A DNA stretch of 64,000 nt from Octopus sinensis (GCF_006345805.1 NC_042998.1:156302001-156366000), one strand, 5' to 3'; numbered from the stretch's first letter, positions 26,726 through 59,500 are shown. Notes: generated from the letters alone by a model not told the origin. Program-made: numbers and translations.

Positions 26726-29700
26726 TCAGGATTTGGGCACCAAGGCCCATTCGAGCAGAGAGTTATTGTTTGCGGAGACATATCCGGGTGTGGGTGGTTT
26801 GTCCGGTACTGTTTGAAGGAATTTGTCCAAAGACTTCTTGAATTTTGTGTGGTCAGTTTCTTTTTTGACGTGCCCTGGTGTAATGTTGAAGAGAGCAGGT
26901 GCAATTGAGGTGAAATAGTTGTGCCGTATTGTCGTTATGTGATGCGATTTAGATTTTTGTTGTGGACGGATGGCACGTGGTCCAAGCCTTGGATGCATTT
27001 TGAAGGTGATGCCAACATCATTCGGACAGTGCTGGTGGAATATTTTCCACATCATACAGATAATGTAGCGTTCACGGCGTCGTTGGAGTGAATACAATTT
27101 CAGCTTCTCTAGTCTACCCCAGTAGTCACGGTCTGACATGCCATCTATCTTTTTTGTGATTGACCTTTGGGGAGCTTCAATTCTCATAATATTTTGTTTT
27201 GTGTAGGGAGACCACAGTGGACAGCAGTATTCAAGGTGGGGTCGGGCAAAAGTGGAGAAGAGAAGGATAATAGCGTGGGAATCTCTCGACTGGAAGGTTC
27301 TGAGAATCCAGGAACACATTCTGCGGGCCATGTCAACTTTGCTGCTTATATGTGTAGCCCAGCTTATGTTGTTGTCCACTGTTACTCCCAGGTCTCAGAT
27401 GTTGTTGGATGCCATGAGAATTTCTCCAGAAGGAAGAGAGTATGGGAGTTTCAGAGCGTCCTCCCTTCCAAAGTGGATCAGTTCAAATTTGTCTTCATTT
27501 AGCAACATGTTATTCTTTTCCGCCCTTGGACAACAGCCAGTAGGTCTGACTGAAGGTTTATTCGGTCATCCACGCCATTGATGACCTTCTGGAGCTTGGA
27601 GTCATCAGCGAAGGTTCTGATGTTACTGTGTTTGATGGTATCAGTAATATCATTTATGTAGATGATGAAGAGAAGTGGGCCCAACACAGTGCCTTGTGGG
27701 ACACCACTGCTGACTTTGGCTGGGCTGGATTTGACTCCTTCGACTACAACATGTTGGGTTCTGTTAGACAGGAAGCACTTGATCCACTGCAGCAACTTTC
27801 CAGTGATACCAATATTGGACAGCTTTCTCAGAAGGATCTTATGATCAACCCTGTCAAAGGCTTTGCTGAAATCAAGGTAGATGACATCAGTGTTGGAACC
27901 TTCTCCCAAGGCTCTCAAAATGTCATCAAAATGATGCAGTAGCTGCGTCAGGCAATCTCTCCCATTACGGAATCCATGCTGGTTGGGGTTCAGCATATTA
28001 TGCCTCTCAAGGAAGTGAGTCATACGCGATCTCAGCACCCTCTCAAATACCTTGATGATATGAGAGGTGAGTGAGATTGGACGGTAATTCACGGCAAGCG
28101 ATTTGTTTCCTTTTTTGAAAACTGGGACACAGACTGGGATAGAAGGTCCTCTGGTATATATCCAGCATCCAGTGAGTTCCGCCACAGATTGGCTAGAGGG
28201 GGTGCAAGTTGGTTTTGACACATCTTCAAGACACAAGCAGGGAACCTATCGGGACCTACTGCTGAATTATGCTTCATTTCCTTTATTGCTGCTAAGACAT
28301 CAGGAGTGCCAAATGTTATGTCCGATAAAGTGTATTGGGGAGTAACATCACTGATACAGCCCAGATCAGTCATATCAGGATTGCTGAAAACAGAGCAATA
28401 TTGTTTCTGCAATATCTCTCCCATGGTTTTGGCATTGTCTTGAAGAGTACCATTTTCATCAATCAGAGGGCCAACAGTAGAACCAGTGACTCTGTGTTTT
28501 TTTGCAAATGAAAAGAACACTTTGGGATTGAGTTTGATCTTCTCAATGGCCCAGGCCTCTTCAGCTCTTCGCTGACTATTGATGATAGACATCATGTTTT
28601 TTGGTGTTATGTTTTTTAATCTCTAGCGACGAGATGGCAGTCAGGTTGGTGTGTTGCTGTGTTGACAGTATTTCAGCATGTTGATCTTTTTGTTGATTCT
28701 TTTAATTTTCCTTATGAGAGATTTCTATTTCTAGGGATTCGACACTTAGATTTGTTTGCAGATCTTAATGGGGTGTGTCTTGCACATATGTTCGTGATGG
28801 TGTCTACAAGTGACTGCCAGGACTTTTTAATGTTAGTGGGTGTGTATGTGTGCGTGAAGGACCAATCGACTTGTGCAAGATCATTATTGATCGCTTCCCA
28901 GTTTGCATTGTGGAAATCCATAGTGTCAAATGGATGAACAGGAGGGATGACATTTGTTTTGCATTTTGGCCAGTGAAATCTCAGATCACAGAGAACCATG
29001 TCATGGTCGGAGAGTAGGGTTTTCTCCACTGCAATATTGTGGATAGTATCAGTGTGATTGCTGAAAATTAAGTCTAAGACGTTTTTGTGACATCTCGTTG
29101 GTTCGAGTACCAGTTGGGACAAGAAGAAGTCATCCATGAAGTCAAGAAGCGATTCCACTGCCTCCCTGTCAGGGGTTGAGAGAGAAGAACCTGGCGGCAG
29201 ACTGTTTGTAGACCAGTCAACCCCGGGAAGGTTGAAGTCTCCCATCATTAAAATGTTGTCAGGTTGACACTGCTGAATGAAACACTTTATGCTGTTGAGG
29301 CATTCCTTAAGCATGGTAGGGGCGTTTGGGGGGTGGTCTGTAGAGCCCAACTACTGTTAAGTTGTTGGTTTGACTGAATACAGCGACTACTTCGCAGTAT
29401 CCATTCGAAAATATGTTCATGGCTTCTGTTGAGAATGAATCATGGACATAAATGGCAGTCCCACCCTTTCTTCTGCCAGCACGATCAGCACGAATGGTTT
29501 TGAAATTTTTAACTTTCACCTCGGCTTCCAAGTGGAGGTCACTAAGATGTGTTTCAGTGAGGACGAAGAAAGGGATGTGGTTTGGATGGGCCTCGACCCA
29601 GTCCTCCAGGAATCTTATCTTCCATTTTTGTGTATTGGTGGAAGGGCTGATGCTTTGGGCATTAAGCAGAAATGTTGAGGCGAGAGTGGATGGTTTTAAT

Positions 29701-29822
29701 TGTTTTGGTGATTTGTTTATTTGATTGCTTTTTAATGGCATGTGCAGTGGGGTATTTGTGGTGGATGGTGGTGGGTGATAGCTCGGATGTTTTTTTTCCA
29801 GTTCTTTTGCTAGATTCATCAT
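26726..29822 (-). CDS. Family C ORF2 APE-RT (five pieces, frameshifted)
   Basis: ORFs 29307-29822, 28712-29350, 28089-28595, 27499-28236 and 26726-27379. Confidence 0.88.
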
Positions 29823-30943
29823 AGCTAAAAAAGAGGAAGGAAGGTGGTTTCCTGTCTAGGGAACCGCAGGTGACTGTGGCCGCGGCTATTTTTATGTGAG
29901 TGTTATCTTTAAATGTCCGACGAGTCCCCGGGAGATGGGTAAAGGGGCAATCCCTGTGCAGACACAATCTGTCTCGCTGGGAATAGCGGCAGATTTGGGG
30001 ATTCCTTGTTTGAGATATTGGTGGTTGTGGTGGTGTTGTATTATGGTGGTTGCTGTTGTAGTTTGTGGGGGGATAGAGCGTTTTGTTCCAGGTAAATGGG
30101 TGAATTTGCAGTCTCTATCAGTGCACAGTCTATGGCGAAGAGAATATCGGCAAATGATGGGGTTTCGAGTGGGTGTGTAGGTGCGTGTGTGTGTGTGAGT
30201 TGTGAAAGGTGTAGATGATAGTTTGTTGAAGTTTTGGCGACCTTTGTGACCTGTAGGAGGTAAATTCCTTGAGATAGCATTAGTAGTAGTAGTTGTAGTA
30301 GTAGGTAGAAGAGATGTTGACAGTGGTAATGATTGAGGAGGTCGATTCCAAGACAAAGATGTTTGTCGATACATAGTTGGAGCTGTACTAGTAGTAGTAA
30401 GCAGAGGAGATGGTGTTGACACTGATGATGATTGAGCTGCTGGGGCAGTGAAAGGAAGGGGTGGTGCTTCCTGCTGTGTGACCCTGATGACTGGGGGGTC
30501 AATCGTTTCGTTTAGCAAATCTGCCATTGTAGATGAATCGAGGAGTGGTTCATCCTGTTGTTGTTGCTGTATCTGTTGTTGTTGCCGCTGAGTTTGTTGT
30601 TGAGGTTGTTGTTGTTGTTGCTGTAGCTGTTGTTGTTGTTGTTGCCGCTGAGTTTGTTGTTGTTGAGGTTGTTGTTGTTGCGCCGGTGATGCGTTCGAAG
30701 AGAAAACACATCTCAGTTTATCGAAGTGTTTATTTATTAATTTAAAAGCAACTTCGATTTGTTTTAATTTATTTTGTATCTGCTGTTCAGATCGAGTTTG
30801 CAAATGGTGAACTGCTCGTTTAGCAATTTCGTTCAGATACGAAGCACCTATGCTCTCTGTTTCGGTAAGGCCATGCCATGTGTTGAGAAGAACGTCGACT
30901 TCATTATCAGACCAGTTTTTGTTGGATTTTTGGTGCTAGCCAT
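29662..30943 (-). CDS. Family C ORF1: Myb/SANT-like, polyQ and two CCCH fingers (frameshifted)
   Basis: Manual translation upstream of ORF 29892-30803 gives NWSDNEVDVLLNTW...EIAKR...RSEQQIQNKLKQIE. Fingers CRYSLRHRLCTDRDCKFTH and ..CLHRDCPFTH. Confidence 0.7.
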
Positions 30944-31360
30944 TCTGGTTGATATGTTTTATTAATTTTATTTTGTTCGTTTGTTTTTGTTGATTACTTT
31001 TAATTATTATTATTTTTTTTTAAGGAGAAGTATGTAGAATTGATTGTACAGAATGTTTGCTGTAATACTGAGAAGTTTGTATTTGAATTATGAGCTTGTA
31101 GTTATTTTATCTTTCTTTTCTTTTCTTTTTTTCCCTCTTTTTCTAATTTTTAATGTGTGGGTGATCCTTTAGTTATCAGAAGGTGTTTGAAAATATTTGG
31201 TCGTTTGAAAATTATGAAAATAGTTTGTGGTTAAGGAAAAGTCTACTCACGAGTTGGGAAAAAGCGTGGTTTCAAATATACAGGAATATATGTGATGGTC
31301 AATTACGACGAATGTAGCTGTGAAGCTTGCTGCTGACCGGCGCAGAGAGGAGTAAAAAAC

Positions 31361-32083
31361 ATATATATATATATATATATGTATACATATATATACACAT
31401 ATATGTATATATGTATACATTTATATATATACATATATGTATATATGTATACATATGTGTATATACATATATGTATATATGTATACATATGTGTATATAC
31501 ATATATGTATATATGTATACATATGTATATATACATATATATATATGTATACATATGTATATATACATATATATATATATGTATACATATATATATACAT
31601 ATATGTATATATGTATACATATATATATATATGTATGTATATATATGTATAATATATATATATATGTTATATATGTATGTATATATATGTATATATATAT
31701 GTATATATATGTATGTATATATATATGTATATGTATGTATATATATATTATGTATATATATATTATATATATATATGTATATATATGTGTATATATATAT
31801 GTATATATATATATATATTTGTATATATATTGTAATATATATATATAAGTATATATATATATATATATGTATATGTATATATATATATGTATATATATAT
31901 GTATATGTTATATATATGTAATATATATGTATATGTACATATATATATGTATATATGTATATATATATGTATATATATATAGATATGTATATATATATAC
32001 ATATATATATGTACATATATACATATACATATATATATTATATACATATATATATTATACATACTATATATAATAACATATAT
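31361..32083. repeat. (TA)n compound microsatellite
   Basis: Directly visible. Confidence 0.95.
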
Positions 32084-33477
32084 AAAAAATTGAGGGAGAT
32101 AAATTATATTAAGTTTAATATCAATTTAAAACCATAGTCCCGCATTCAAAAAATCTGAGGAGTCAGAGAAAATTCAAATATATGTGTATATTGGCAGGGC
32201 TGGCCTCCTAGGTAGCCGGCCAGAATGCTAGAAAATAGATCATAAACGATCAAACTACAAGGAAGTTCTCTAGAGGAAGAATTCAGCGAACACCAGAACC
32301 AAATTTGGCGTGCAGGACATATGAAAAATAAATAAAATAAAAAACAGACTTAATGCATACCTCGGTTTCGGTCTTAACAAAAGAATTACTTGCATAATTC
32401 AAGTGTCCGTGACTTCTTCAGTACATTCGGTCCTCGAGATGCAACTGAAAGACTAACCCCAGCTCTCTGTGTCAAGACAGACACGTGCTTAGTCTTACTG
32501 ATTACATCGGAATAAAATTTCAAATGTCTTGGTTCCGGCGCGCTAATAGACTCCTGAAGCGAAGGGCTGCAGTGAATAATTCACTGCGGGTAAAGCTTAC
32601 TGCTAGGGAACGTATTTATTTAAATATTTAAAAAATTGAGGGAGATAAATTAATATTAATTTTAATATCAATTTAAAACCAGTAGTCCAGCATTCAAAAA
32701 ATCTGAGGAATCTATGCAAGTAATTCTTTTGTTAAGACCGAAACCGAGGTATGCATTTAAGTCTGTTTTTTATTTTATTTAATTTTTCATATGTCCTGCC
32801 CGCCAAATTTGGTTCTGGTGTTCGCTGAATTCTTCCTCTAGAGAACTTCCCTTGTAGTTTGATCGTTTATGATCTATTTCTAGCATTCTGGCCGGCTACC
32901 TAGCAGGCCAGCCCTGCCAATATACACATATATTTGAATTTTCTCTGACTCCTCAGATTTTTTGAATACTGGACTACTGGTTTTAAATTGATATTAAAAT
33001 TAATATTAATTTATCTCCCTCAATTTTTTAAATATTTAAATAAATACGTTCCCTAGCAGTAAGCTTTACCCGCAGTGAATTATTCACTGCAGCCCTTCGC
33101 TTCAGGAGTCTATTAGCGCGCTGGAACCAAGACATTTGAAATTTTATTCCCGATGTAATCAGTAAGACTAAGAACGTGTCTGTCTTGACACAGAGAGCTG
33201 GGGTTAGTCTTGCGGTTTGCATCTCGAGGACCGAATGTACTGAAGAAGTCACGGACACTTGAATTATGCAAGTAATTCTTTTGTTAAGACCGAAACCGAG
33301 GTATGCATTTAAGTCTGTTTTTTATTTTATTTAATTTTCATATGTCCTGCCCGCCAAATTGGTTCTGGTGTTCGCTGAATTCTTCCTCTAGAGAACTTCC
33401 CTGTATTTGATCGTTTATGATCTATCTCTTTCTAGCATTCTGGCCGGCTACCTAGCAGGCCAGCCCTGCCAATATAC
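32084..33477. ncRNA. Inverted pair of about 550-bp tandem units with type I hammerhead folds (retrozyme/PLE-like)
   Basis: Left arm 32084-32709 and right arm 32713-33477 are reverse complements of circularly permuted units. HHR on minus at 32352-32427 and on plus at 33234-33309; half-HHR at 32713-32757. Confidence 0.78.
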
Positions 33478-33663: not shown

Positions 33664-33695
<32 letters not shown>

Positions 33696-33799: not shown

Positions 33800-33847
<48 letters not shown>

Positions 33848-37835: not shown

Positions 37836-38531
37836 AAAAGGGCTTAGTAAAATAATTACTTTGCCGCATACTGAACTCATTAGCAATAGCAGCTAAAAAC
37901 TTTTTTAAGGCTATTTCTAATACTTAAAGAAAATCTCTCTCATATATAGTGTTTGCATAATTTAACTCACAAAGTTTGGGGTAATGACATCGAAAATCAA
38001 ATGCTAAGGTTATTCGAGAACGTACGTTTCAAGATTAGTCAAAACACATTTCTATCATCGGCTCGGAAATTCCTTGGTTTGGATTTGGAAACACTGAAAA
38101 TAAGACATACCCTCTCTCGAAGATCTGCTCCCACTAACAGTGTCAACAAATTCAAAATAAGCAAGCGAAGAATCTCTGTTCTCCCCTTTCCACCAGCGTG
38201 GGTTAAAATCATCAAACTCTATGCTTATTTCGGTAAGTCCAAGCATTAATCAGAGGGAGATTAATTATAATTTCAACAATTAAGGGCAAAATTAATTAAT
38301 TATTAATCAATTTCACCAGTGTTCAGTATGCAAAGGGACCATTCAAGGGAATTCAAATTATTACATTATAACTGCTATTTCTAATGAGTTCAGTATGCGG
38401 CAAAGTATTTATTTTACTAGCCCTTTCTATAATGTAATAATTTGAATTCACCTTGAATGGTCCCTTTGCATACTGAACACTTGGTGAATTGATTAATAAT
38501 TAATTAATTTTGCCCTCAATTGTTGAAATTA
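37836..38531 (-). mobile_element. Decayed hammerhead-bearing unit related to 51412-52319, with inverted terminal segment
   Basis: Shares AAGGG..TTAG..A(G/C)AATAGCAG and GAAACGTACGT. Decayed HHR at 38013-38068. 104-bp inverted repeat at 38267-38370 / 38428-38531. Confidence 0.65.
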
Positions 38532-38533
38532 TA

Positions 38534-38599
<66 letters not shown>

Positions 38600-38612
38600 C
38601 ATATACATATAT

Positions 38613-41600
38613 GATTGATTGAGTGATTGATTGATTCTAGTTTCAGCTTATGAGCTGTGGCCATGCTGGGGCACCGCCATTTGGTGTTGCTACTTGGTTT
38701 CACTTCACGAAAGCTTTCTAGTAACTGCCATTTGGTGCATGAGAGAGTTCGATGCAGCTGCCCTCATCTGCCCCTCCTGCCGTGAAGTTGGTTCATCTGG
38801 GACACCTGACAGGAAGAGATCCAGCTTCAGTTTAAAGACATCTGCTTCCACCCCATCCAGGTCTCTCAGGTTCTTCGGGAGGATATTGAAGAGCTGTGGG
38901 CCTCGGAAGCCCAGGCTATCACAGAATCTTGTCCTACATCTTGATGCAGTTTGGAGTCCTAGGCACCACGCAGTGGCGCCCAGTTCTGGCATTTGCGTAA
39001 CTCTCGATGCCAAGTTTCAGGACACTTCCCTGCAGGATCTTCCAGATGTATATTATGGCATATCTTTCCCGCCTACGCTCCACGGAATATAGTTTTAATC
39101 TCTTGAGTCTTTCCCAGTAGCTTACATTCTGCATAGAGGCTATCTTCTTCGTGTAGCTCCGTTGGATCGCCTCGTGCTCTGTGATCAACTTGACACTGGA
39201 TGGTGACCATAACTGAGAGCAGTAGTCAAAGTGGCTTAGGACAAGTGTCCTCCAGAGGACCATCATGGCTTCTTGTTCTCTTGTTCTAAAGGTTCTAAGG
39301 ATCCATCCGGCCAGTCGTCTACATTTCATTGCCAATTTAGCAACATGTACACGAAGGTCGCGTCATCACTCATGTAAATACCTAGGTCACGCACTGATTG
39401 TGCCTCTGGGTTGCCTTCCTCCGGGTCCAGTGTATTCATTGGGTATTGCATTCGTTTTGCATGCTGATAGTATATAAGCTTGAAACTTTCCAGCATTGAA
39501 CTGCATGCTATTCTTTTCAGCCCACTTGTATATTTCGTCCAGCTCACATTGCAGGTGCTTAGTGTATTCAGGGTTCTGTATTGCCTGTGAAACTTTTGTA
39601 TCATCTGCATAACTTGTGATCGTGGCTCTCCGCGTGGCTGAGGGCATGTCTGAGAGGCGCATTATGAACAGTAGTGGTCCCAAAACAGTGCCCTGTGGAA
39701 CACCGCTCACTACTTGCGTGCTAATGGAAGTGGCCCCATTGGCTGCTACCACCTGACTTCTATCTTTCAGAAAGTCATGAAGCCATTCTCCTAGTTTTCC
39801 AACTATGCCAAGATCACGCAGTTTGTGACATATCATTCCATGATCGACTTTATCGAAGGCCTTTGCGAAGTCGAGATATATGACTTCCACATTTGAGTGG
39901 TTGAGTGGTTTCAGCACCCAGTCATAGTGCTGCAGGAGCTGAGTTAAGCAGCTTCTTCCTGGTCGGAAACCATGTTGGGTGTCAGGCAGCAAGTCATTTT
40001 CTTCAAGGAAGGTGATTAGTTTCCTTCTGACTATTCGTTCCATGACCTTGCTGATGTGTGAGGTCAGAGAGATAGGTCTGTAGTTCTTGGCCTCCGCTCT
40101 GCTACCTCCTTTATGAATAGGGCATATTTTACCTTCCTTCAGTTTTCTTGGAAGTTTGCCAGCTGCAAGGAAGCTCTGAAAGAGGAACTGCAGTGGTCTT
40201 GCTAGGACTCTCTTACAAACTTTTAGGAGGATTGCCGGGAATCCATCGGGGCCAATAGCTGGAGTCTGTTTTCATTTCCATCTATAGCCTTTATTACATC
40301 GTCTCCTTTATATCGATGTATTTATCGTCACCCCAACCGCCTCTGATTCTATATCTGCAGTGGTAAAGAAGTCAGTTGGATTGCTGATTTGGAAATGCCC
40401 AAGGGGTGGAGTGAAAACACTCTTGAATTGTTCATTCAGTATTCACTTACCTCATTGGTTTTCCTGTGAGTGTGCCATCCTTTTCAAGGAGTGGCCCTAT
40501 CCTACATGCACCGTAGCTGTTTCTTTGGCATACATGTAGAAAGCTCTGGGGTTAGTTTTTATGTTGTCTATAGCCCAGGCTTCTTTGTCTGCTCTTTTCT
40601 CTTCTCATGGGAGAGTTGCAGACAATTTTCAATTTCCAACAGTTTTATTTTCAGGCGGACTTTTCACTGCTTTCAATTTGTTTGTTTAGGCGATTTGAAA
40701 TTTTGTACGCCGTCTCTCATTAAATTTCCTCTCTCTGGGATTTTGTTCTTGTGTACAGTGGCCTTTCTCTCTGGGACACATTTGTAGCATATGGCTTGCA
40801 TTACATACATGAATTGTTGAAGTATCATGTCGATGTCCGGCGAGGAGAGACATTCAGGCCAGTTTTGTTTGAGGATCTCTTTCTCAATTTGTTTCCAGTT
40901 TGCCTTATTGAAGTTCAAGCTGGAAAGATTCTGAGGGTTTCTTGTAGGCTGCATGTCCGTGCTCTCTTTTGGCCCGTACATGGTCAGCTCTACCATGTTG
41001 TGATCCGAGAGTAGTGTCGGTGTCACTTTCACATTATGGATGAGATCCATATTATTTGTGAAGCAGAGATCCAGTGTGTTACCTGCTCTGGTTGGTTGGA
41101 GTATTACTTGCTCCATGTACAGGGTGTTGATGAGGTTCAGGAGGGACCTCGCCTGTCCTCGTTCACATCTTGTCATTCCTGGGAGAGAAAGGCCCTCGGG
41201 CCATCTGACATTGGGTAGATTGAAGTCTCCCATGAGAAGTACACTTATGTGTTGTTCTAATTGGATTAGAACTTCTTCTATTTTTAAAAGGCAGTCCTCA
41301 AACTTGCCCATATGACTTGGGGCATCTGGAGGGCGATATGTAGCACACACAACTACATCAAGTTGCCTTATGTGTACAATTAGTGTGTCACACACCGAGT
41401 TTGAGTATGACAAAAGGACCTGGGGTGTGAGGTCCCCACGGATGTACATAGCAACTCCTCCATGACTCCTTTCTTTTCTGTCGGTCCGTAGTACGACATA
41501 CTGTGGTATGTGTAATTCCGCATCTGCTATGTCCGGTTTCAGATGCGTTTCTGTGAGTGCTATGCATAAGGCTTGATTGCATGCGACAAAGTCTCTCAGG

Positions 41601-42358
41601 AACGGGACTTTTGTCCTGTTACTGTGTGTTAGTAGTCCTCTGATGTTCAGTAGGAGCATCGAGGTGAGGTATATGCTGTTGCCGGCGGTGTCCACCCTGG
41701 GTCCATCTGCTGTGGCAGTCTGTGAACTGTGGGCAGTTCCATCTGCGAGCCTGAAGCCTATGATGGCCAGGTTAGCTGCTGTACAATCTTTTGTGCCATG
41801 CACAAAAAAGATTCCTGCTCAGCAGCTGCCCTTTCAACAACACGTTGGTGGTTTTGGTACGCACCACATCTGCGTACCTCCGTTTTGGGGCAGGTGATGC
41901 GGGTCCATCCCATTTCCTTTCGGTGGTTGGTTTCTGTGGCAGGGTCCCGGATGTGCAAAGCGGCAGCCTGCACTTCCTCTCCATGCCGGCAGGCACCTTT
42001 CAGGTAGAACCTACATACCCGTGTGCGCTGCTTGTTTCCATCCTTTTGGCATATGTAGTTAGGTTTGCCTCTATCCCTGGCTGCCTTGCCCTTTGGCTTT
42101 GTCTGAGTTTTAGCTTCAGTTTTTCTTCCTTTTTGGTTTTTTCATCTCCATGTCCATGGCTTTTGTGCTGGTAGGAGCATCCGCACCTGGGTTCATCTCC
42201 CGGCAGGCCTTTCACTGGAGTTTTCTTCCTGGGCGTCTACCAGGTGGGGGTGACCCTCCTCATCAGCGCCCGCGTCTCTATCCTGCCATCTTTTACTTTG
42301 TTCGCGTTTTTCGCTGTCAAAAATGGCATCCCGTGTTACTGTGCGATCTGACAAGTGC
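38613..42358 (-). mobile_element. CR1/L2-like LINE family A (subfamily A2), 5'-truncated within ORF1
   Basis: CCCH region, APE ORF 40673-41803 (LLLNIRGL, TETHL, MGDFNLP, SDH) and RT ORF 39387-40043 (YADD). (AATC)n tail. TA arrays on both sides. Confidence 0.92.
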
Positions 42359-42359
42359 A

Positions 42360-42425
<66 letters not shown>

Positions 42426-42525
42426 TATATACATATATATATATACACATATATATATACACACATATATATACACACATATATATATACATATATATAT
42501 ATATATACATATATTATATATATAC

Positions 42526-42591
<66 letters not shown>

Positions 42592-42677
42592 ATACATATA
42601 CATATACATATATATACATATACATATATAATATATATATATATATTATTATAATATACATATATATATATATACAT

Positions 42678-42746
<69 letters not shown>

Positions 42747-44097: not shown

Positions 44098-46820
44098 CGG
44101 GAAGCTTTATGAAAATAAAAAAAGACGAAGGCAGGTGGGAAAACAGACGAACAATTGTATTAGTATGGCGCTCAGGAAATATAAATAAAACAAGTCTTTA
44201 ACGTTTCGAGCCTACGCTCTTCAAACAGAAAGATACACAGAGAGAGAAAAACACAGAAAGAAGGAGAGAAAAAAAATGCGTGCAGTAGCTAACGAATCAA
44301 CATGGCGATCTGATTTCGGCCAGAGGTCAAAGATCAAACATGAGACGCGAGAGCGAAATAAGGGGAGATAATAGGGTGATAAACGGGTTGAGGGACCAGC
44401 TAAAAGTGCGTGGGAGGGGTCTGGAGGTGTGTATGTATAGGGTTGGTGTATGTGTAGTAGTATAAGGGTGTGTGGTTGTTGTGTGTGTGTATGAGAGAGT
44501 ATTAGTGCGTAAGATTGGTCTGGACGTGCGTATGTATGGGGTTGGTGTATGTATAGTTGTATTAGTATGTATTAGTACGTATTGGTATGTATAGGTATGT
44601 GTGTGTGTGTGAGAGAGTATAAGTGCGTATGCGGGTCTGGACGTGTGTATGTATAGGGTTTTTGTAAGTATTAGTATGTACTAGTATGTATTAGTACGTA
44701 TTAGTATGTATTAGTTGGTGTGTGTATTAGTATGGCACATCATATGTGATGTGATGTGTAAAGTCATGTGGTTGTAGTGAGGAGGAGAGGAGAAGAGGGG
44801 GAGGGGGAGAAGAGGGGGAGAAGAGGGGGGGGGGAGCAGAGAGGGGGAGAGAAGGGGCGGGGAAGAAGAGGGGGAGGAGAAGGGGGAGAGGAGAGGATGG
44901 GGGGGGAGAAGGAAGGGGAGGAGGGGGATGAGGATGAAGGAGGAAAAGGGGAGAGGGGGAGAGAGGGAGGGAGGGAGCAGAGGGAGGGGAAAGATAGAGG
45001 GGGAGAAAGAGGGAAGAGGAAGGGGAGTAGGGGTGAAAAAAATGAAGGATGAAGGACTGAAGAAGTAGGGGTCGGGGGGAGAAAGGATAGGGGAGGAGGG
45101 GGGGAGAGGGGGGTTAGATGAGGAGGGGGGAGAGTTGAGACCAAATGGCGTATAAGAGCGAAGAGAGAGATTAATTCCTGTTCACGCGCAAACGGGAATC
45201 CGGATGGCCTCTGTGTAAGGACAAACCGAACACAGATAGGTGTTGCAAGGAGTGACGGTGGAGCGGAAATGGCGTGAGACCGGTGTGTCGTTCGCAAGGT
45301 GGATGTCACGAAGGTGTTCCGCGAACCGGTCAGCCAAGCGGCGTCCCGTTTGTCCGATGTACAAGGAATTGCAGAGAGAGCAAGAGATGCAATAGATAAT
45401 ATTGCTGGAGGTGCAGGTGAAGGAGTGGATGATGGGATAGGGTCGATGGGTGGGTGCTAGTGAGGCGGGTGGTGTTGGAGAGGTAAGGGCAAGTGCGGCA
45501 ACGTGGGCGGGAGCAGGGGAACGAGCCGGGTTGGGAGGTAGGGTCAGGGAAGGAGCTATGGACCAAAAGGTCTCGAAGGTTGTGGGCTCGTTTGAAAGAG
45601 GGGAGGGGTCGGTTAGGGAAGAGAGTGTGAAGTGGACGGGTCGGACTGGAGATGACGGAAAGCTCGAAGAATGGTGCGTTGGGACGTAGGGTCGTGGGGT
45701 GGTAAGTGAGGGGAAAAGGGAGGCGGGGAGACTACAGGGCGGGTTCGGGGAGAGAGAGAGAGAGCAGATACACGGTCCACGGACCGTGCTCTGGCAAGGG
45801 CGGTGTGGATAGTGGTGTGAGGGGTATCCACGTAGGGTGAAGTGGTGAGCCATACGTTGAGACTGAGTCTCAAAGTCATGGTCGTCACTACAGAGCCTAC
45901 GTAGACGGAGGAATTGGGAATAGGGGATGGAAAGCTTGGTATGTTCTGGGTGGGAGGAAGAGGAAGGGTTGAGGTATGAGTGTGAGTCTGGTGTTTGTAG
46001 TGAATGGAGTGGTAAGAGTGGAGTGAAGAATGCTAACCGAAATGTCGAGGAAGGAGAAGAGGTGTGGAGATAGTGGAAGTGAAGTGGAGGGCTGGATGGA
46101 AAGATTGGACGAAAGAGAGGAAGGAATCTAGATGTTCGCGGGAGAGTGAGGTGGCACCGATAATGTCGTCAATATAACGACCATATAGTTCAGGAGTGGG
46201 ACCAGTGAAATTAGAGAATATTTGGGCCTCAACATAGCCAACGAACAGGTTCGCATAGTTGGGGCCCATTCGCGTTCCCATGGCCACTCCCGAGACCTGA
46301 TGGTAGAACTCGCCCGCGAACGAGAAGCAGTTCAGAGTAAGGACAAGTTCGGCCAGACGAATGAGTGTGGAGGTGTCAGGTACAGGGTTGGAGCGGAGGT
46401 CAAGAAAGTGTCGAAGGGCCTGCAGTCCTTCGTGGTGAGGGATAACAGTATAGAGGCTTTGGATGTCCATAGTAAAAAGGATTTTGGAGGAGCCGGGAGG
46501 AAAGGAGAAAGAGTTGAAAAGCCGGAGAGCATGGTTGGTATCGTGGATGTGGGAGGGAAGAGATGCCACTAGGGGGGCAAGGACACGGTCAAGGTATTTA
46601 GAGATGAGCTCCGTGGGGCAGTTACAGGCGGAGACGATGGGGCGGCCAGGTTGTTGGGTTGTGGATTTTGGGGAGGAAGTAAATGGTGGGGGTACGTTGG
46701 GTTCGCACAATTAGGTTGGATGCGGTGCGGGGGGAGACGGGAGGACGAGATGAGGTCTTGGACGTAGAGGATACCTGTTGGTAGCTACGTGTGGGGTTAG
46801 AGGGCAGAGGGGGGGACATA
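44095..46820 (-). mobile_element. Penelope-like element (RT + GIY-YIG), 5'-truncated at a TA array
   Basis: RT ORF 46033-46710 (PGRPIVS, FTMDIQSLYT, GVAMGTRMGPNYANLF, RYIDD). GIY-YIG ORF 45182-45853 (IIYCISC..C..LYIGQTGRRLADRFAEH). pLTR at 44095-44330. Confidence 0.93.
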
Positions 46821-46911
46821 GATACATATATATATATATACATATATATATACATATATATATATATACATATATATAAACATATATATATATATATATA
46901 CATATATACAT

Positions 46912-51411: not shown

Positions 51412-52319
51412 AGCAATTAAGGGGTTAGCAACGAATTGCCTCACCACACACCGAGTTTAGAAATAGCAGTCAAAGATATAGCTATTCCTTCTACAAAAGG
51501 GAGATTCAGTAAAAAGACAGCACTTGAAAGGCAAACACAGACAGGTAAGAAAGAATGAAATTACGGCAATCTATCATACAATTTTAAGTTACCTACGGAC
51601 GTACGTTTCGAAATCAAGTTTTAGGAAAGCATAAGAATTAGAAAATTCTACCTTACCCAAACTTCTTTTCTCATCAGCGTAGGATACTACAATTATGAAT
51701 AATTGTATATTAAATTTTGAGATACTAGAAGGCATTATCTCAACTCAGTGTCAGAGCGAGCCAAAGCATTCCCAGTACCACGAAATTCAAAGTGTGAATG
51801 AAAGTTTGTGTCACCAGCCCCCTTCCACCCGCGTGTAGCCAAGACAAGATGCTGTGGTCATTTACTGGGATAAAATATGGTTATCATTAACAATAAAGGG
51901 TGAAATTAATTAATTTGGAATAATTATTAATTACACCAAGTAGATTTCGGCATGTAAAAGCCTCATTCGAGGAAAATTTAAGTAATACTAAGCAATTAAG
52001 GGTTTAGCAACGAATTGCCTCACCACACACCGAGTTTAGAAATAGCAGTCAAAGAGAAATAGCTATTCCTTCTACTAAAAGGGAGATCTCAGTAAAAAGA
52101 CAGCACTTGAAAGGCAAACACAGACAGGTAAGAAAGAATGAAATGACGGCAATCTATCATACAATTTTAAGTTACCTACGGACGTACGTTTCGAAATCAA
52201 GTTTTAGGAAAGCATAAGAATTAGAAAATTCTACCTTACCCAAACTTCTTTTCTCATCGGCGTAGGATACTACAATTATGAATAATTGTATATTAAATTT
52301 TGAGATACTAGAAGGCATT
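51412..52319 (-). ncRNA. Retrozyme-like element: about 325-bp direct repeats, each with a type I hammerhead (583-nt monomer)
   Basis: Repeats at 51412-51736 and 51991-52319. HHRs at 51592-51683 (CUGAUGA) and 52175-52266 (CCGAUGA), each with CCUACG/CGUAGG stem I and GAAAC-GUAC-GUC. Confidence 0.85.
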
Positions 52320-52724
52320 CTATCTCTCATTCTATCTTACTCCCCTCTTTCAAATATATAAATTCTCTCTATATTTCTTCCTTCTCTCCCTATCTCTTCA
52401 GTTTCTCTCCCGCTTCTCCTTGTCTCTCCATTACTCTCTTCTATCTCTTCAGTTTCTCTCCCGCTTCTCCTTGTCTCTCCAGTACTCTCTTCTATCTTAC
52501 TCTCCTCTCTCGGATACATATAAGGACATAGACGCTTTCTCTCTCTTCCTTCAGCTCTCAGTCTCTCCTCTTCCTCTTCTCTCTTACTCTCGGCTCCCAA
52601 TTTCTCCTTAAGTACATAGACGCTCTCTTTCTCTACTTCCTCCCTACCCCCTATTGCACTATTAGATTAATATAAATTAATATAATATAATTAGATAGAT
52701 AGAAGGATAGATAAAATATCAATA

Positions 52725-53654
52725 ATGTCCAGAACCTGGAAACGTGACGAACTGGCGAGGTTCCTGCGAGGATGGCAATGCGCTGACGGAGAATATCCAA
52801 ATAATATAATTACGGCTGCGCTGAAGAACAACGGATACAAAAGGACGTCAGCTCAAATAGAGCGGAAGAAGCAAGAATTTATACGCTCCTACGCACTTGT
52901 CAGATCGCACATTAACACGCTGGATGCCATTTTTGACAGCGAAAAACGCGAACAAAGTAAAGATGGCAAGGATAGAGACGCAGGCGCTGATGAGGGGGGT
53001 CACCCCCACCTGGTAGACGCCCAGGAAGAAAACTCCAGTGAGAGGCCTGCCCGGGAGATGAACCCAGGTGCGGATGCTCCTACCAGCACCAAAAGCCATG
53101 GACATGGAGATGAAAAAACCAAAAAAGGAAGAAAAACTGAAACTAAAACACAGACAAAGCCAAGGGGCAAGGCAGCCAGGGATAGAGGCAAACCTAACTA
53201 TCCATATGCCAAAAAGGATGGACACAAGCAGCGCACACGGGTATGTAGGTTCTACCTGAAAGGTGCCTGCCGGCATGGAGAGGTAGGTGCAGGCTGCCGC
53301 TTTGCACATCCGGGACCCTGCCACAGAAACCAACCACCGAAAGGAAATGGGATGGACCACGCATCACCTGCCCCAAAACGGAGGTACGCAGATGTGGTGC
53401 GTACCACAAACCACCAACGTGTTGTTGAAAGGGCAGCTGCTGAGCAGGAATCTTTTTTGTGCATGGCACAAAAGATTGTACAGCAGCTAACCTGGCTCCA
53501 TCAGGCTCAGGCTCGCAGATGCGGAATTACACATACCACAGTATGTTGTACTACGGACCGACAGGAAAGAAAGGAGTCATGGAGGAGTTGCTATGTACAT
53601 CCGTGGGGACCTCACACCCCAGGTCCTTTTGTCATACTCAAACTCGGTGTGTGA
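52725..53654 (+). CDS. Family A ORF1: Myb/SANT-like domain plus CCCH zinc finger
   Basis: WKRDELARFLRGW...ALKNNGYKRTSAQIERKK and VCRFYLKGACRHGEVGAGCRFAH. The frame after 53521 is altered by the deletion. Confidence 0.75.
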   Translation: MSRTWKRDELARFLRGWQCADGEYPNNIITAALKNNGYKRTSAQIERKKQEFIRSYALVRSHINTLDAIFDSEKREQSKDGKDRDAGADEGGHPHLVDAQEENSSERPAREMNPGADAPTSTKSHGHGDEKTKKGRKTETKTQTKPRGKAARDRGKPNYPYAKKDGHKQRTRVCRFYLKGACRHGEVGAGCRFAHPGPCHRNQPPKGNGMDHASPAPKRRYADVVRTTNHQRVVERAAAEQESFLCMAQKIVQQLTWLHQAQARRCGITHTTVCCTTDRQERKESWRSCYVHPWGPHTPGPFVILKLGV

Positions 53655-54991
53655 CACACTAATTGTACACATAAGGCAACTTGATGTAGTTGTATGTGCT
53701 ACATATCGCCCTCCAGATGTCCCAAGTCATATGGGCAAGTTTGAGGACTGCCTTTTAAAAATAGAAGAAGTTCTAATCACATTAGAACAACACATAAGTG
53801 TACTTCTCAAGGGAGACTTCAATCTACCCAATGTCAGATGGCCCAAGGGCCTTTCTCTCCCAGGAATGACAAGATGTGAACGAGGACAGGCGAGGTCCCT
53901 CCTGAACCTCATCAACACACTGTACATGGAGCAAGTAATACTCCAACCAACCGAGCAGGTAACCACACTGGATCTTGCTTCACAAATAATATGGATCTCA
54001 TCTATAATGTGAAAGTGACACCGACACTACTCTCGGATCACAACATGGTAGAGCTGACCATGTACGGGCCAAAAGAGAGCACGGACATGCAGCCTACAAG
54101 AAACCCTCAGAATCTTTCCAGCTTGAACTTCAATAAGGCAAACTGGAAACAAATTGAGAAAGAGATCCTCAAACAAAACTGGCCTGAATGTCTCTCCTCG
54201 CCGGACATCGACATGATACTTCAACAATTCATGTCTGTAATGCAAGCCATATGCTACAAATGTGTCCCAGAGAGAAAGGCCACTGTACACAGAACAAAAT
54301 CCCGAGAGAGAGAAAAATTTTAATGAGACGGCGTAAAAATTTCAAATCGCCTAAACAAACAAATTGAAAACAGTGAAAAGTCCCGCCTGAAAATAAAACT
54401 GTTGGAAATTGAAAAATGTCTGCAACTCTCCCATGAGAAGGAAAGAGCAGACAAAGAAGCCTGGGCTATAGACAACATAAAAACTAAACCCAGAGCTTTC
54501 TACAGGTATGCCAAAGAAACAGCTACGGTGCACTGTAGGATAGGGCCACTCCTTGAAAAGGATGGCACACTCACAGGAAAACCAATGAGGGTAAGTGAAA
54601 TACTGAATGAACAATTCAAGAGTGTTTTCACCCCACCCCTTGGGCATTTCCAAATCAGCAATCCAACTGAATTCTTTACCACTGCAGATATAGAATCAGA
54701 GGCGGCGACGATAGATTACATCGATATAAAGGAAGACAATGTAATAAAGGCTATAGATGAAATGAAAACAGACTCAGCTATTGGCCCCGATGGATTCCCG
54801 GCAATCCTCCTAAAAGTATGTAAGAGAGTCCTAGCAAGACCACTGCAGTTCCTCTTTCAGAGCTTCCTTGCAGCTGGCAAACTTCCAAGAAAACTGAAGG
54901 AAGGTAAAATATGCCCTATTCATAAAGGAGGTAGCAGAGCGGGGCCAAGAACTACAGACCTATCTCTCTGACCTCACACATCAGCAAGGTC

Positions 54992-56335
54992 ATGGAACGA
55001 ATAGTCAGAAGGAAACTAATCACCTTCCTTGAAGAAAATGACTTGCTGCCTGACACCCAACATGGTTTCCGACCAGGAAGAAGCTGCTTAACTCAGCTCC
55101 TGCAGCACTATGACTGGGTGCTGAAACAACTGCTCAACCACTCAAATGTGGAAGTCATATATCTCGACTTCGCAAAGGCCTTCGATAAAGTCGATCATGG
55201 AATGATATGTCACAAACTGCGTGATCTTGGCATAGTTGGAAAACTAGGAGAATGGCTTCATGACTTTCTGAAAAATAGAAGTCAGGTGGTAGCAGCCAAT
55301 GGGGCCACTTCCATTAACACGCAAATAGTGAGCGGTGTTCCACAGGGCACTGTTTTGGGACCACTACTGTTCATAATGGCCCTCTCAGACATGCCCTCAG
55401 CCACGCGGAGAGCCACGATCACAAGTTATGCAGATGATACAAAAGTTTCACAGGCAATACAGAACCCTGAAGACACTAAGCACCTGCAATGTGAGCTGGA
55501 CGAAATATACAAGTGGGCTGAAAAGAATAGCATGCAGTTCAATGCTGAAAAGTTTCAAGCTTTATACTATCAGCATGCAAAACTGAATGCAATACCCAAT
55601 GAATACACTGGACCCGGAGGGATTGCAATCCCAGAGGCACAATCAGTGCGTGACCTGGGTATTCACATGAGTGATGACGCGACCTTTCATGTACATGTTG
55701 CTAAACTGACAATGAAATGCAGACGGCTGGCTGGATGGATTCTTAGAACCTTTAGAACAAGAGAACAAGAAACCATGATGGTCCTCTGGAAGACACTTGT
55801 CCTAAGCCACTTTGACTATTGCTCTCAGCTATGGTCACCATCCAGTGTCAAGTTGATCACAGAACTTGAGGCGATCCAACGAAGCTACACGAAGAAGATA
55901 GCCTCTGTGCAGCATACGAGCTACTGGGAGAGACTCAAGAGATTAAAGTTCTATTCCCTGGAGCGTAGGCGAGAAAGATATGCCATAATATATATCTGGA
56001 AGATCCTGGAAGGTCTTGTCCCAGACTTTGGCATCGAGAGTCAACAAACGCCAGAACGGACGCCACTGCGTGTACCAAGGACTCCAAATTTGCCATCAAG
56101 ATGTAGGACAAGATATTGTGATAGCCTGGGCTTCAGAGGCCCACGGCTCTTCAATATCCTCACGAAGAACCTGAGGGACCTGCATGGTGTAGATGCGGAT
56201 GTCTTTAAAGTAGGACTGGATCTCTTCCTGTCAGGTGTCCCGGATGAACCAACTTCACGGCAGGAGGTGCAGATGAGGGCAGCTGCATCGAACTCTCTCA
56301 TGCATCAGATGGCGTTTGCTAAAAAGCATCCGTGA
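54992..56335 (+). CDS. Family A reverse transcriptase (447-aa open stretch)
   Basis: QHGFRPGRSC, YLDFAKAFDKVDH, PQGTVLGPLLF, YADD, DYCSQLW, RRRERY. Confidence 0.92.
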   Translation: MERIVRRKLITFLEENDLLPDTQHGFRPGRSCLTQLLQHYDWVLKQLLNHSNVEVIYLDFAKAFDKVDHGMICHKLRDLGIVGKLGEWLHDFLKNRSQVVAANGATSINTQIVSGVPQGTVLGPLLFIMALSDMPSATRRATITSYADDTKVSQAIQNPEDTKHLQCELDEIYKWAEKNSMQFNAEKFQALYYQHAKLNAIPNEYTGPGGIAIPEAQSVRDLGIHMSDDATFHVHVAKLTMKCRRLAGWILRTFRTREQETMMVLWKTLVLSHFDYCSQLWSPSSVKLITELEAIQRSYTKKIASVQHTSYWERLKRLKFYSLERRRERYAIIYIWKILEGLVPDFGIESQQTPERTPLRVPRTPNLPSRCRTRYCDSLGFRGPRLFNILTKNLRDLHGVDADVFKVGLDLFLSGVPDEPTSRQEVQMRAAASNSLMHQMAFAKKHP

Positions 56336-56463
56336 GGTAAACCGTGTAGCAAACCAAATGGCGGTGCCCCAGCATGGCCACAGCTCATTAGCTGAAACTG
56401 GAAAAATCAAAAATCAATCAAAATATATATACACATATATATATATATAAATCATATATATAT

Positions 56464-56495
<32 letters not shown>

Positions 56496-56514
56496 TATAT
56501 ATATAATATATATA

Positions 56515-56563
<49 letters not shown>

Positions 56564-56564
56564 T

Positions 56565-59500
56565 CTCTCTCTCTGTTCCTATATTTCACTAGAAGAAAAT
56601 GGCAAGAAACTGGTCTGCGAGAGAGGTGCAATTGTTCGTCCGTGCTTGGAGGATTGCTGAGGACGACTCGCCGAACAACATTATTGCTGCGGCGCTGAAA
56701 AGCAACAATTTTTCGAGAACCACCGCCCAGATAGAGCGAAAGAAGAGAGAAGTTATCCGTTCGTACGCTCTAATCAGGCAACATGTGGACACCCTGGACA
56801 TCATCCTGGGAGGTGACGGCAGCAGGGAGGGCCAAAAGGATGAGGAAAGCATCCAGAGCCAAATGGAGAAGCCTGGAACACAGGGAAACGATGACACATG
56901 TCCAGCTTCCAACACCACAACTGAAGACCAAAGAGGTGCGATGGCCGCAAGAAAGGAAAGGCACCCTGGAATTGATGGGAAGCAGGAGGTAAAGGGTGAC
57001 AGAATCAAGGCTAAAGGAAGCCCTGTCCAGAGAAAGCAGAGGGACCCCAGCAAAACTGTAAGGGCAGGAAAAGAAACACCTGCAAATTCTACCTGAGGGG
57101 GGACTGCTGGTACGGCGTCGAAGGTGCAAACTGTCGCTTTGCACATCGGAGGCCCTACCAAAACCGCACGGACGCGAGACAGAGGTCCCTCCCTCAGGGA
57201 GAACAAAAACAAAAATAAAAAGTTAAAAGAAGGGAAAAAAGCGCACTGACCACTACTGAAAGACGGTATGCAGATGTGGTGCGCGGAAACCCAACAGGTG
57301 GCCAGCTTCACCCAGATGTGAGAAGGGAGGCAGCTGAACAGCAATGTTTTTTGTGCATGGCACAAAAAATTGTTCAGCAGCTGACCTGGCTACAAGCACA
57401 AAGCTGGAACTACCACCACATAAGGCCACCTCCAACAGATGTCGGATGGCCACCACAGACACCACACCAACAACACACCACAAAAATATTTCTACTGAAT
57501 GTAGGAGGGCTGCTGCGCGGAGGAAACTGTAAAAAGAAAAATTCATTCCTGAGAGACCTTGTGACATGCAATCAAGCTATATGCATGGCACTCACAGAAA
57601 CGTATCTTGAACCCGATATAGGTGATGCAGAAATACACATGCCGCAATATGCAGTATACGCACAGATAGAAAAGGGAGGAGCCATGGTGGAGTTGCAATG
57701 TACATCCGAGATGACCTCACGCCCCAGGTCCTGCTGTCATATTCAAACTCAGTATGTGAAACTCAAATTGTACACATAAGACAAATGAATATCGTCATAT
57801 GCACTACATATCGCCCACCAGATGCCCCAAAACACTCAGGCATGTTTGAAGACTGCCTAACAAAAATAGGAGAAGTCCTCACCAACCTTGAACAGCACAA
57901 CAGTGTTTTCTTCATGGTGTGACTTTAACCTCCCCAATGTGGAATGGCCTGGGGGGCAGATGCTCCCAGGGATGACACACCATCAGCAGGCACAGGTGGA
58001 GTCCCTGCTCCATCTCACAAAGCCTCTTTCATGGAGCAAATAGTTCTGCAACCAACAAGGCAGAATTAATTACTGGATCTCTGCTTCACAAACAATATGG
58101 ATATTATCCATAATGTTAATGTGATGCCGACAATGATCTCGGATCACAACATAATAGAGCTGTCTATGTATGGAACAAAAGCCCCCACAAGACACACAGC
58201 CTATACGAAGCACACCACCATCTCTCCAACTTAAACTTTCATAAAGCCAACTGGAAGTGGCTTTATGAGAAAGAGATCCTCAAACAGGATTGGCCTGAAT
58301 GTCTCTCCACACCGGACATAAACATGAAACACAAACACTTCATGTCCATAATACAAGCCATATGTGACAAATATGTCCCAAGTGTGCAGGGCCAGCACAC
58401 ACAAGAACAAAAACAGGATCCCTAGAGAAAGGAGGATTCTTATGAGACGACGGACAAGGATTGCAAACCGCCTGAGCAAGCACACCAAAAGTGGTGAGAA
58501 GTCTCGGCTCGAAAGAATGCTAATGGAAACGAGAAAAGTCTACATCAGTCCCATGAAAAGGAGAGAGAGAGATAAAGAAGCTTGGGTAATAGAAAATATA
58601 AAATCAAACCCTAAAGCTTTCTTTAAGTTTGCCAAAGAGACAGCCACAGTGCACCAGAGAATAGGACCTCTCTTCCAAAAAGATGGCTCTCTCACAGGAA
58701 ATCCCACGAGGATAAGTGAAATACTGAACGAACAGTTCCAAAGTGTGTTCACTACACCTCTAGGACACAGGCAAGTAAACAACCCAGCAGAATTCTTTGC
58801 CACTTAACCTGCGGCCAAAGAGACAAAAATTGAGTACATCAACATCGAAGATGATGATATCACACTAGCCATAGATGAGATTGACACAAACTCAGCTGCT
58901 GGACCTGATGGATTCCCAGCGATCCTTCTCAAATCGTGCAAACGAGCCCTTGCAAAACCGCTACAGCTTCTTTTTCAGAGCTTTCTTGCAGTGGTAAGCT
59001 CCCAGTCAAATTGAAAGAGGGGGTAATAATTGCCCTACATTAAGGGAGGTAACAGAGCAGATGCTAAAAATTATAGGCCTATCTCTCTGACCTCACACAT
59101 CAGCAAAGTCATGGAACGAATAGTCCGTAAGAAACTAATCATGTTCCTTGAAGAAATGACTTACTGTCTGATACCCAGCATGGATTTCGACCAGGTAGAG
59201 GCTGCCTAACACAGCTCCTGCAACACTATGACTGGGTGTTGAAACAGCTACTAAATGGCTCAAATGTGGATGTAATATATCTTGACTTTGCAAAAGCCTT
59301 TGATAAAGTCGACCATGGTATGATCTGTCACAAACTGCGTGGTCTCCGCATAGGCGGGAACTTGGAGAGTGGCTGCACAAACTTCCTAAAAGACAGAAAA
59401 CAGGAGTTGTGAGCAATTCAGCCACCTCCAAGGAAACGCAAATAACAAGCGGTGTCCCACAGGGCACTGTCTTGGGGCCACTGATGTTCATAGTGGCCCT

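Follow-up and report, generated by a model that had tools for sequence, protein, structure and literature searches.

What job is done by the first open reading frame (ORF1) of a long interspersed nuclear element (LINE) when it carries both a Myb-type fold and a zinc finger? The question is raised by a 64,000-nucleotide stretch of the Octopus sinensis genome (hereafter the window), in which three LINE families, A, B and C, and a truncated copy, A', have a common ORF1 layout upstream of an apurinic/apyrimidinic-type endonuclease (APE) and a reverse transcriptase (RT). The layout runs from an N-terminal Myb/SANT-like domain through a disordered linker and one or two CCCH zinc fingers to a conserved C-terminal helix. 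ORF1 is the least understood part of a LINE, and its catalogued forms are RNA-binding/chaperone, PHD or esterase proteins; a trihelix domain and a CCCH finger in one ORF1 suggest a different job, that of bridging the element's RNA to a chosen DNA site. We put at roughly 55% the probability that these are octopod two-ORF LINEs whose ORF1 protein (ORF1p) acts as a bipartite RNA/DNA adaptor, steering the ribonucleoprotein (RNP) to (TA)n microsatellites.

The Myb/SANT-like domain and its companions in ORF1

Within the Myb/SANT superfamily, the N-terminal domain belongs to the trihelix/Myb_DNA-bind_4 branch, as a genuine but divergent member. A Myb/SANT (trihelix-like) N-terminus had been proposed in the original prediction from the sequence of this window, and Pfam, a profile search and the AlphaFold2 fold agree with it. 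Myb_DNA-bind_4 (PF13837) was the sole or top Pfam family for the N-termini of A, B and C, which cover the same region of the profile (C, 25.8 bits, E = 1.4e-5; B, 20.2 bits, E = 7.9e-4; A, 15.5 bits, E = 0.023), and two relatives from the LINE families lie above its curated gathering cut-off of 27 bits (P0024, 31.7 bits; P0031, 29.3 bits). A domain profile built from six family members matched 53 of 1.84 billion representative proteins at E ≤ 1e-3. Short single-domain proteins made up 32 of these, nearly all of them LINE ORF1s or fragments, and the remainder were long proteins with multiple copies of the domain. Pfam found Myb_DNA-bind_4 in 19 of the 53 (best E = 2.7e-145), MADF in 14 and the GeBP DNA-binding domain in nine. 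P0051, a single-domain host-type Myb_DNA-bind_4 protein, was matched at E = 1.2e-4 in the whole library.

Two further observations concern the same set of matches. Long proteins among them (P0019, P0020, P0023, P0026 and others) each contain 4-8 tandem weak matches to the domain, and TINF2_N, the N-terminus of TERF1-interacting nuclear factor 2, was found by Pfam in 7 of the 53.

The three families had been described as divergent, and they are: the A and B domains are 54% identical, while those of the A/B and C types are only ~20% identical. Despite this, the A/B-type and C-type domain profiles matched one another with 96.9% probability (E = 1.6e-10). Nearly invariant residues of the domain are W5, E9, W17, R40, Q44, K48 and Y56. 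Between A and B, the proportion of non-synonymous differences in the domain (pN, 0.28) is below that of synonymous differences (pS, 0.84). The A/B identity, the profile match and pN against pS together indicate that the resemblance between the three families is more than chance.

AlphaFold2, given a 20-sequence alignment of LINE-type members only, modelled the domain as three helices (residues 7-19, 25-35 and 42-80), the third of them long, with a mean predicted local distance difference test score (pLDDT) of 86.6. A Myb_DNA-bind_4 match and a three-helix fold are thus what the Pfam and AlphaFold checks of the domain returned, and the outcome that would have spoken against the domain, no profile hit or no such fold, did not appear. 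In a Foldseek search of the PDB, the highest probability (0.72) went to the DNA-binding domain of Arabidopsis GT-1 (2jmw), the archetypal trihelix, with template modelling (TM) scores of 0.55/0.53 and a root-mean-square deviation of 3.0 Å over 65 columns, at a non-significant E-value of 1.3. The highest TM-scores were those of the DMAP1 SANT domain (0.58/0.63) and the PHR1 MYB domain (0.52/0.70). A PDB sequence search with the domain profile gave nothing significant, the top match being the first helix of the RSC8 SANT domain (E = 0.18). A hand count on the translation shows 13 K/R and 8 D/E residues in the domain, a net positive charge as expected of a nucleic-acid binder.

Behind this domain, A and its full-length relatives P0017, P0025, P0027 and P0034 have one order of modules: Myb-like domain, non-conserved linker, finger, YADAV motif and helix. 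Their consensus motifs are CKF(F/Y)xxGxCxHGxxGxGCRFxHP for the finger, (S/R)YADAV, and AAxEQxxFLxMAQxIVxxLTW for the helix. CCCH fingers following the Myb domain had also been claimed, and we find the predicted fingers present and conserved, with Cys/His ligands at characteristic spacing. In the A/B type, C-x7-C-x8-C-x3-H, the third Cys and the His are invariant, and the first two Cys occur in six of seven aligned full-length ORF1s. The fingers fell under the Pfam cut-offs (zf-CCCH_4, 20.1 against 24.6 bits; zf-CCCH_PARP12, 20.2 against 27; zf_CCCH_4, 19.6 against 29), as single short fingers often do. Family C and a 4569-bp assembled contig, L002 (Logan SRR29346471), keep the three modules in diverged form (ICRYSLRERICLQQDCTFTH and SFLDMLNLVKEI in L002, SFLAMMNLAKELEKK in C). 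No Pfam match to RRM, CCHC, PHD, esterase or Tnp22 was found in the ORF1 pieces of A, B and C (E ≤ 1) or in the full-length relatives (E ≤ 0.1).

In the AlphaFold2 model of the whole A ORF1, the Myb domain has a pLDDT above 90, residues 81-170 form a disordered linker of ~90 residues, and a long C-terminal helix spans residues 229-265 (pLDDT ~93); the finger is of low confidence, as would be expected of a model lacking zinc. The C-terminal helix is conserved and amphipathic. Purifying selection has acted on the ORF1 modules: the ratio of non-synonymous to synonymous rates (dN/dS) between A and B is ~0.24 for the CCCH finger and ~0.06 for the C-terminal helix, in addition to the pN and pS of the Myb domain. 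The A and B linkers cannot be aligned.

The stretch beginning TTTTTTGTGCATGGCACAAAA is the most conserved part of ORF1 at both the protein and the nucleotide level (53433-53498, 57327-57392 and 41767-41829). It lies ~130 nt upstream of the ORF1 stop/ORF2 start seen in A', and in O. vulgaris locus L001 it holds an ATG in the ORF2 frame. The stretch may have a double role, as a peptide motif and in ORF2 translation.

Element copies and the joining of ORF1 to ORF2

The window is eukaryotic sequence, of which ~11-12% consists of (TA)n-like microsatellites, nearly all within 23.7-63.7 kb. Ten copies of the Myb-CCCH LINE group lie within 24.7-63.5 kb, and none in the first 24 kb. Besides A, B and C, a further family, D, is set apart by its own tail, (AAAGAGTA)n. 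The A, B and C sequences quoted in the original prediction were all found where it had placed them, and an open frame from the ATG at 52725 does hold both the Myb-like domain and the CCCH finger of A. In A, the domain, the finger and the C-terminal motif share a single frame. Features of A are:

52725-53654 (+), ORF1 as open in the A copy, with its ATG at 52725 and the true ORF1 end at ~53522
52737-52934 (+), Myb/SANT-like (trihelix, Pfam Myb_DNA-bind_4-type) domain
53244-53309 (+), CCCH zinc finger, C-x7-C-x8-C-x3-H, CRFYLKGACRHGEVGAGCRFAH
53433-53498 (+), conserved C-terminal motif AAAEQESFLCMAQKIVQQLTWL, within the long helix
53512-56335 (+), ORF2, comprising an APE remnant, the reverse transcriptase (RVT_1, E = 2e-25) and a C-terminal domain
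56336-56557 (+), 3' untranslated region (UTR) and short (AAATCA)-like tandem tail, then (TA)n at 56424-56557

Past ~53522, a ~213-bp deletion relative to A' joins the ORF1 of A out of frame to the APE region. Upstream of A, a 336-bp direct repeat (51412-51741 and 51991-52326) has two units of 97% identity at a spacing of 579 bp, and after it comes CT-rich sequence containing 51-bp tandem units (52390-52511). The repeat and the CT-rich stretch may be the 5' UTR of A or another element; the A 5' region showed no homology with the 5' UTRs of the other families, and no 5' boundary was recognised. The junction deleted in A is retained in the truncated copy:

38606-42361 (-), A', 94-96% identical to A but truncated at the 5' end, flanked by (TA)n at 38530-38598 and at 42366-42746

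A' keeps the end of ORF1 and the start of ORF2, and 8 nt upstream of the stop of its restored ORF1 frame there is a candidate ORF2 ATG, which lies in another frame.

Family B begins straight after the (TA)n tract of A, with only ~40 nt from the tract to its ATG. Its CCCH finger lies in another frame than its Myb-like domain, which bears out the single frameshift that had been assumed for it.

56599-57096 (+), N-terminal frame of the B ORF1, with its ATG at 56599
56611-56808 (+), Myb-like domain
57081-57146 (+), CCCH finger CKFYLRGDCWYGVEGANCRFAH, in a different frame from the N-terminus
57327-57392 (+), C-terminal motif EAAEQQCFLCMAQKIVQQLTWL
57353-60377 (+), ORF2 (APE and RT), its 3' end lost to an assembly gap

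The gap consists of 99 N (60378-60476) and interrupts the 3' end of B a little short of a TA-rich tract.

The minus-strand ORF1 of C had been described as hidden by a homopolymer shift and as having two CCCH fingers, and both are confirmed, the shift lying in an A-run. The 5' UTR of C starts at ~31361, adjoining a TA-rich tract at 31362-32072.

30702-30943 (-), start of the C ORF1, with its ATG at 30943 and then a 1-base shift in the A-run (~30916-30920)
30914-30702 (-), Myb-like domain, reading NWSDNEVDVLLNTW...RSEQQIQNKLKQ (end RSEQQIQNKLK; Pfam E = 1.4e-5)
30152-30096 (-), CCCH finger 1, CRYSLRHRLCTDRDCKFTH, C-x8-C-x4-C-x3-H
29991-29935 (-), CCCH finger 2, CRYSQRDRLCLHRDCPFTH, C-x8-C-x4-C-x3-H, in another frame
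~29834-29784 (-), C-terminal ORF1 motif SFLAMMNLAKELEKK, running into ORF2
26726-29834 (-), C-terminal ORF1 motif and ORF2 (APE, RT and C-terminal domain)
26423-26725 (-), 3' UTR, (TTCTAAGTTA)2 tail and (TA)n at 26626-26423

The Myb-CCCH ORF1 belongs to the LINE. In each of A, A', B, C, L001, L002, L004 and L006, ORF1 and ORF2 form the same collinear unit, with the frames abutting or overlapping. In O. vulgaris loci L001, L004 and L006, as in L002, this ORF1 is followed by APE and RT; the ORF2 frame of L001 overlaps the end of ORF1, and L002 has a C-type Myb-CCCH ORF1 with an intact 1093-aa APE+RT ORF2 at a ~160-nt overlap. In L003 (SRR22824287), ORF2 begins 90 nt past ORF1. In B and C, ORF1 and ORF2 are read through in frame, yet both copies carry other frameshifts. 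A single fused ORF, considered from B and C, was rejected, the ORFs being separate, overlapping or spaced in A', L001, L002 and L003. We take two ORFs to be the ancestral layout and treat the exact ORF2 start as approximate.

The RT of C is 48% identical to that of A, and the L002 RT is ~40% identical to those of the window families; the Myb-CCCH ORF1 type therefore spans quite divergent RT lineages. Given the divergence of the L002 RT, the type either is of old origin or has passed from one RT lineage to another. Named relatives of the studied proteins come from octopods only (Octopus vulgaris, O. sinensis and Argonauta hians), and the named ORF1 homologues are uncharacterised, 'hypothetical' Octopus proteins without domain annotation, which the present analysis supplies.

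As to the kind of LINE, ORF2 matched Exo_endo_phos_2 (APE, E = 1.5e-11) and RVT_1 (E = 2e-25). No other Pfam domain, including RNase H or a C-terminal CCHC, was found in the pieces scanned, which covered the APE of A', 447 aa of RT and C-terminal sequence from A, and the C-terminal part of C. The C-terminal 'L-x-L-x-S-L-E-x-R-R' region ('YSLERRRERY...') is one we take to be CR1/L2-like, and we treat it as a lead. The nearest named RTs, at 62-63% identity, are hypothetical proteins from Argonauta hians; the database names of the closest RTs gave no clade, being absent or, as with 'RPP40', wrong. Tails are short tandem repeats and not poly(A): (AAATCA)n in A, (TTTTAAGGA)n in B, (TTCTAAGTTA)2 in C and (AAAGAGTA)n in D. 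Such tails fit the CR1 group, for which poly(A) has been reported in Zenon only (PMC13343379). A 'CR1/L2-like' label for the group is plausible on architecture and tails, as distinct from an RT phylogeny.

(TA)n flanks and the choice of target

The 3' tails of all copies run into (TA)n, except that of B, whose 3' end falls in the assembly gap. The short tails differ among the four families, each of them being followed by (TA)n. The 5' ends of truncated copies at 24944, 25816, 42361, 48937, ~49796 and 62490 adjoin TA-rich tracts, as do those of the full-length C (~31361) and B (56558). Of 18 copy ends in the window, 15 have a TA tract no more than 15 bp away, a count that rises to 17 when the 24-nt family tail is allowed for; chance would give ~14% of ends (binomial P ~1e-10). 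Two O. vulgaris loci, L001 and L006, are likewise flanked by (TA)n on each side. These observations suggest a strong, though not necessarily strict, preference for inserting into (TA)n, including the tails of earlier copies.

How ORF1p might contribute can be put as a mechanism. The CCCH finger, of a kind that is typically a single-stranded-RNA module, would bind the element's RNA, perhaps with the C-terminal helix helping to hold it through multimerisation or contact with the ORF2 protein (ORF2p). The basic Myb/trihelix domain would bind double-stranded DNA and so concentrate the RNP at (TA)n tracts, where APE would nick the DNA and reverse transcription would be primed. ORF1 would then play a role akin to that of the N-terminal zinc-finger and Myb module of R2, but supplied in trans. 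DNA binding by the Myb domain and its targeting role are predicted, with the (TA)n flanks as circumstantial support. Within this proposal, the stricter claim that ORF1p, and not ORF2p, picks the target, the trihelix domain reading the (TA)n duplex and tethering the RNP, is doubtful. If it were true, these would be the first APE-type LINEs to owe a site preference to a separable, trans-acting DNA-binding ORF1 module, and the first (TA)n-specific LINEs, with a module that RT lineages could in principle exchange. Taken with the (TA)n context, the architecture offers a testable model of how an APE-type LINE could gain a site preference with its enzyme unchanged. Such a model bears on how target specificity evolves, on octopus genomes with their unusual wealth of repeats, and on the retargeting of retrotransposon machinery.

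Several points weigh against the adaptor proposal. All three window N-termini score below the 27-bit Myb_DNA-bind_4 cut-off, and no Foldseek match in the PDB had a significant E-value (none below 0.4), so that only the ranking by probability and TM-score was used; non-significant values are usual for an 80-residue helical domain. DNA binding by the domain, (TA)n included, is itself a prediction from sequence, and relatives of the SANT type bind histones rather than DNA. The 18 junctions are not independent, because neighbouring copies share tracts, and the 5' flank of L004 is not (TA)n. The CR1/L2 placement is one by architecture and not by RT phylogeny. Finally, the (TA)n preference can be explained without ORF1, through APE cleavage and pairing of a (UA)n tail.

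This last point is the core of the main rival, which our data cannot separate from targeting by ORF1. ORF2 and the RNA would choose the target, APE preferring TA steps and a (UA)n 3' tail annealing to nicked (TA)n, while the Myb-like domain would have another role: RNA binding or chaperoning, chromatin or histone contact, nuclear import, or recruitment of a host factor. Since every family ends in (TA)n after its own tail, transcripts may also end in (UA)n, and for known microsatellite-targeting APE LINEs it is endonuclease specificity that is favoured (PMC3812793). The place of the DMAP1 SANT domain among the best structural matches and the L004 copy, outside (TA)n at its 5' side, point the same way. 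The basic charge of the domain, however, and its profile position in the DNA-binding trihelix/MADF branch, not among histone-binding SANT domains, speak against such roles; the CCCH finger is moreover already an RNA module, so a second, DNA-type fold suggests a separate ligand. We consider targeting by ORF2 and RNA possible, at rather less than even odds.

The Myb-like domain might instead bind the element's own DNA, for example a CT-rich 5' UTR or promoter, and make ORF1p a self-encoded transcription regulator. Trihelix and MADF proteins are transcription factors, and the elements do have long CT-rich 5' UTRs with internal repeats. Yet no DNA motif common to the 5' UTRs of the families was found, the ATG of B follows the (TA)n tract after just ~40 nt, and self-regulation would leave the (TA)n context unexplained; we consider it improbable. 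Most improbable of all is that the Myb/SANT likeness arose by chance in a generic small helical region, or that ORF1 is a piece of an unrelated neighbouring element such as a Harbinger-type Myb gene: the sub-threshold Pfam scores of the window copies, Foldseek E-values above 0.1 and the insignificant PDB sequence search would allow it, but three independent families match one region of one Pfam model, two relatives exceed its cut-off, the host protein P0051 was retrieved at E = 1.2e-4 from 1.84 billion proteins, and the ORF1-ORF2 unit is collinear in all eight copies and loci listed above.

Two other repeats lie in the window. A Penelope-like retroelement remnant at 45182-46710 (- strand) adjoins a TA tract at 46827; one of its ORFs matches RVT_1 (E = 3.4e-8), and a downstream ORF matches GIY-YIG weakly (E = 1.2e-3, motif IIYCISCSLCNSLYIGQTGRR). 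A ~113-bp repeat, GGCAAGCTGGCAGAATCGTTAGCATGC...GAGTTCAAATTCTGCC, is found at 62599-62711, with a TA-rich tract on one side and the 5' end of an A-like copy on the other; two more copies are at 11139-11229 and 12013-12127. It is probably a short interspersed nuclear element, and a tRNA scan of it with ARAGORN found no tRNA.

Comparison with known systems

LINE ORF1s are sorted into types I-V, a scheme reportedly due to Khazina and Weichenrieder in 2009. Formally, the octopus Myb-CCCH ORF1 is 'type V, unclassified'. The elements resemble CR1/L2/Jockey LINEs in having two ORFs, APE and RT in ORF2 and a short tandem tail (Metcalfe & Casane 2014, PMC4120745; 2026 vertebrate CR1-group survey, PMC13343379). 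As in those groups, ORF1 is built of modules, one of them zinc-binding, and of long disordered stretches, and it varies between related RT lineages. Described ORF1s of the CR1/L2/Jockey group consist of RRM+CCHC, coiled coil+RRM+C-terminal domain (Tnp22), PHD or esterase (PMC4120745, PMC13343379), and unlike types I-IV the octopus ORF1 has no detectable RRM+CCHC, Tnp22, PHD or esterase. Neither the Jockey/CR1/L2 ORF1 survey (PMC4120745) nor the 2026 CR1-group survey (PMC13343379) mentions a Myb, SANT or CCCH ORF1, and none appears in two mollusc transposable-element papers (PMC11203168, PMC10294476) or in a paper on LINEs in the octopus brain (PMC9115989). A literature search on Myb, SANT, trihelix or CCCH in LINE ORF1s returned nothing relevant, CCCH appearing only in the host restriction factor ZAP. 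The original prediction had called this an unusual ORF1 class, and so it appears: no domain of a described type was detected, and the architecture is not already catalogued in the surveys named above. The Myb-trihelix plus CCCH ORF1 is thus a type absent from the searchable ORF1 surveys, a scope that lies outside Repbase and Dfam.

Among DNA transposons, PIF/Harbinger elements likewise encode a trihelix-type protein separate from the catalytic protein. Their Myb-like accessory protein binds the element ends and recruits the transposase. PIF/Harbinger differs in being a DNA transposon, with no RT, CCCH finger or RNA intermediate, and the likeness is at superfamily level. TRAS and SART, telomere-specific APE-type elements of the R1 clade, have a Myb-like region proposed to help recognise their repeat target. 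There, the region lies inside ORF2, between endonuclease and RT, and ORF1 has CCHC knuckles.

Other APE or related LINEs are known for microsatellite targets. Waldo, Mino, Kibi, Koshi and Dong belong, to our knowledge, to the R1, Tx1/L1 or R4 groups, and we know of no Myb ORF1 among them. Like Waldo (ACAY), Mino (AC), Kibi (TC), Koshi (TTC) and Dong (TAA), the octopus copies tend to lie within one kind of microsatellite, with the repeat on both sides (PMC3812793). Unlike them, the octopus elements are associated with (TA)n, an association that is strong but, given L004, perhaps not strict. A review of microsatellite LINEs lists ACAY, AC, TC, TTC and TAA as targets and no (TA)n LINE, TA being recorded only for Micron miniature inverted-repeat transposable elements (PMC3812793).

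The closest functional parallel to the adaptor proposed here would be R2, whose coding capacity likewise has, at its N-terminal end, a zinc finger and a helical domain of the Myb type; the R2 zinc-finger and Myb module reads the target DNA upstream of the nick (PMC12503042). R2 differs in having a single ORF, a restriction-like endonuclease, C2H2-type fingers, a classical Myb domain and a 28S ribosomal DNA target, whereas the octopus LINEs combine a separate ORF1 on an APE-type element with a CCCH finger and a trihelix/Myb_DNA-bind_4-type domain.

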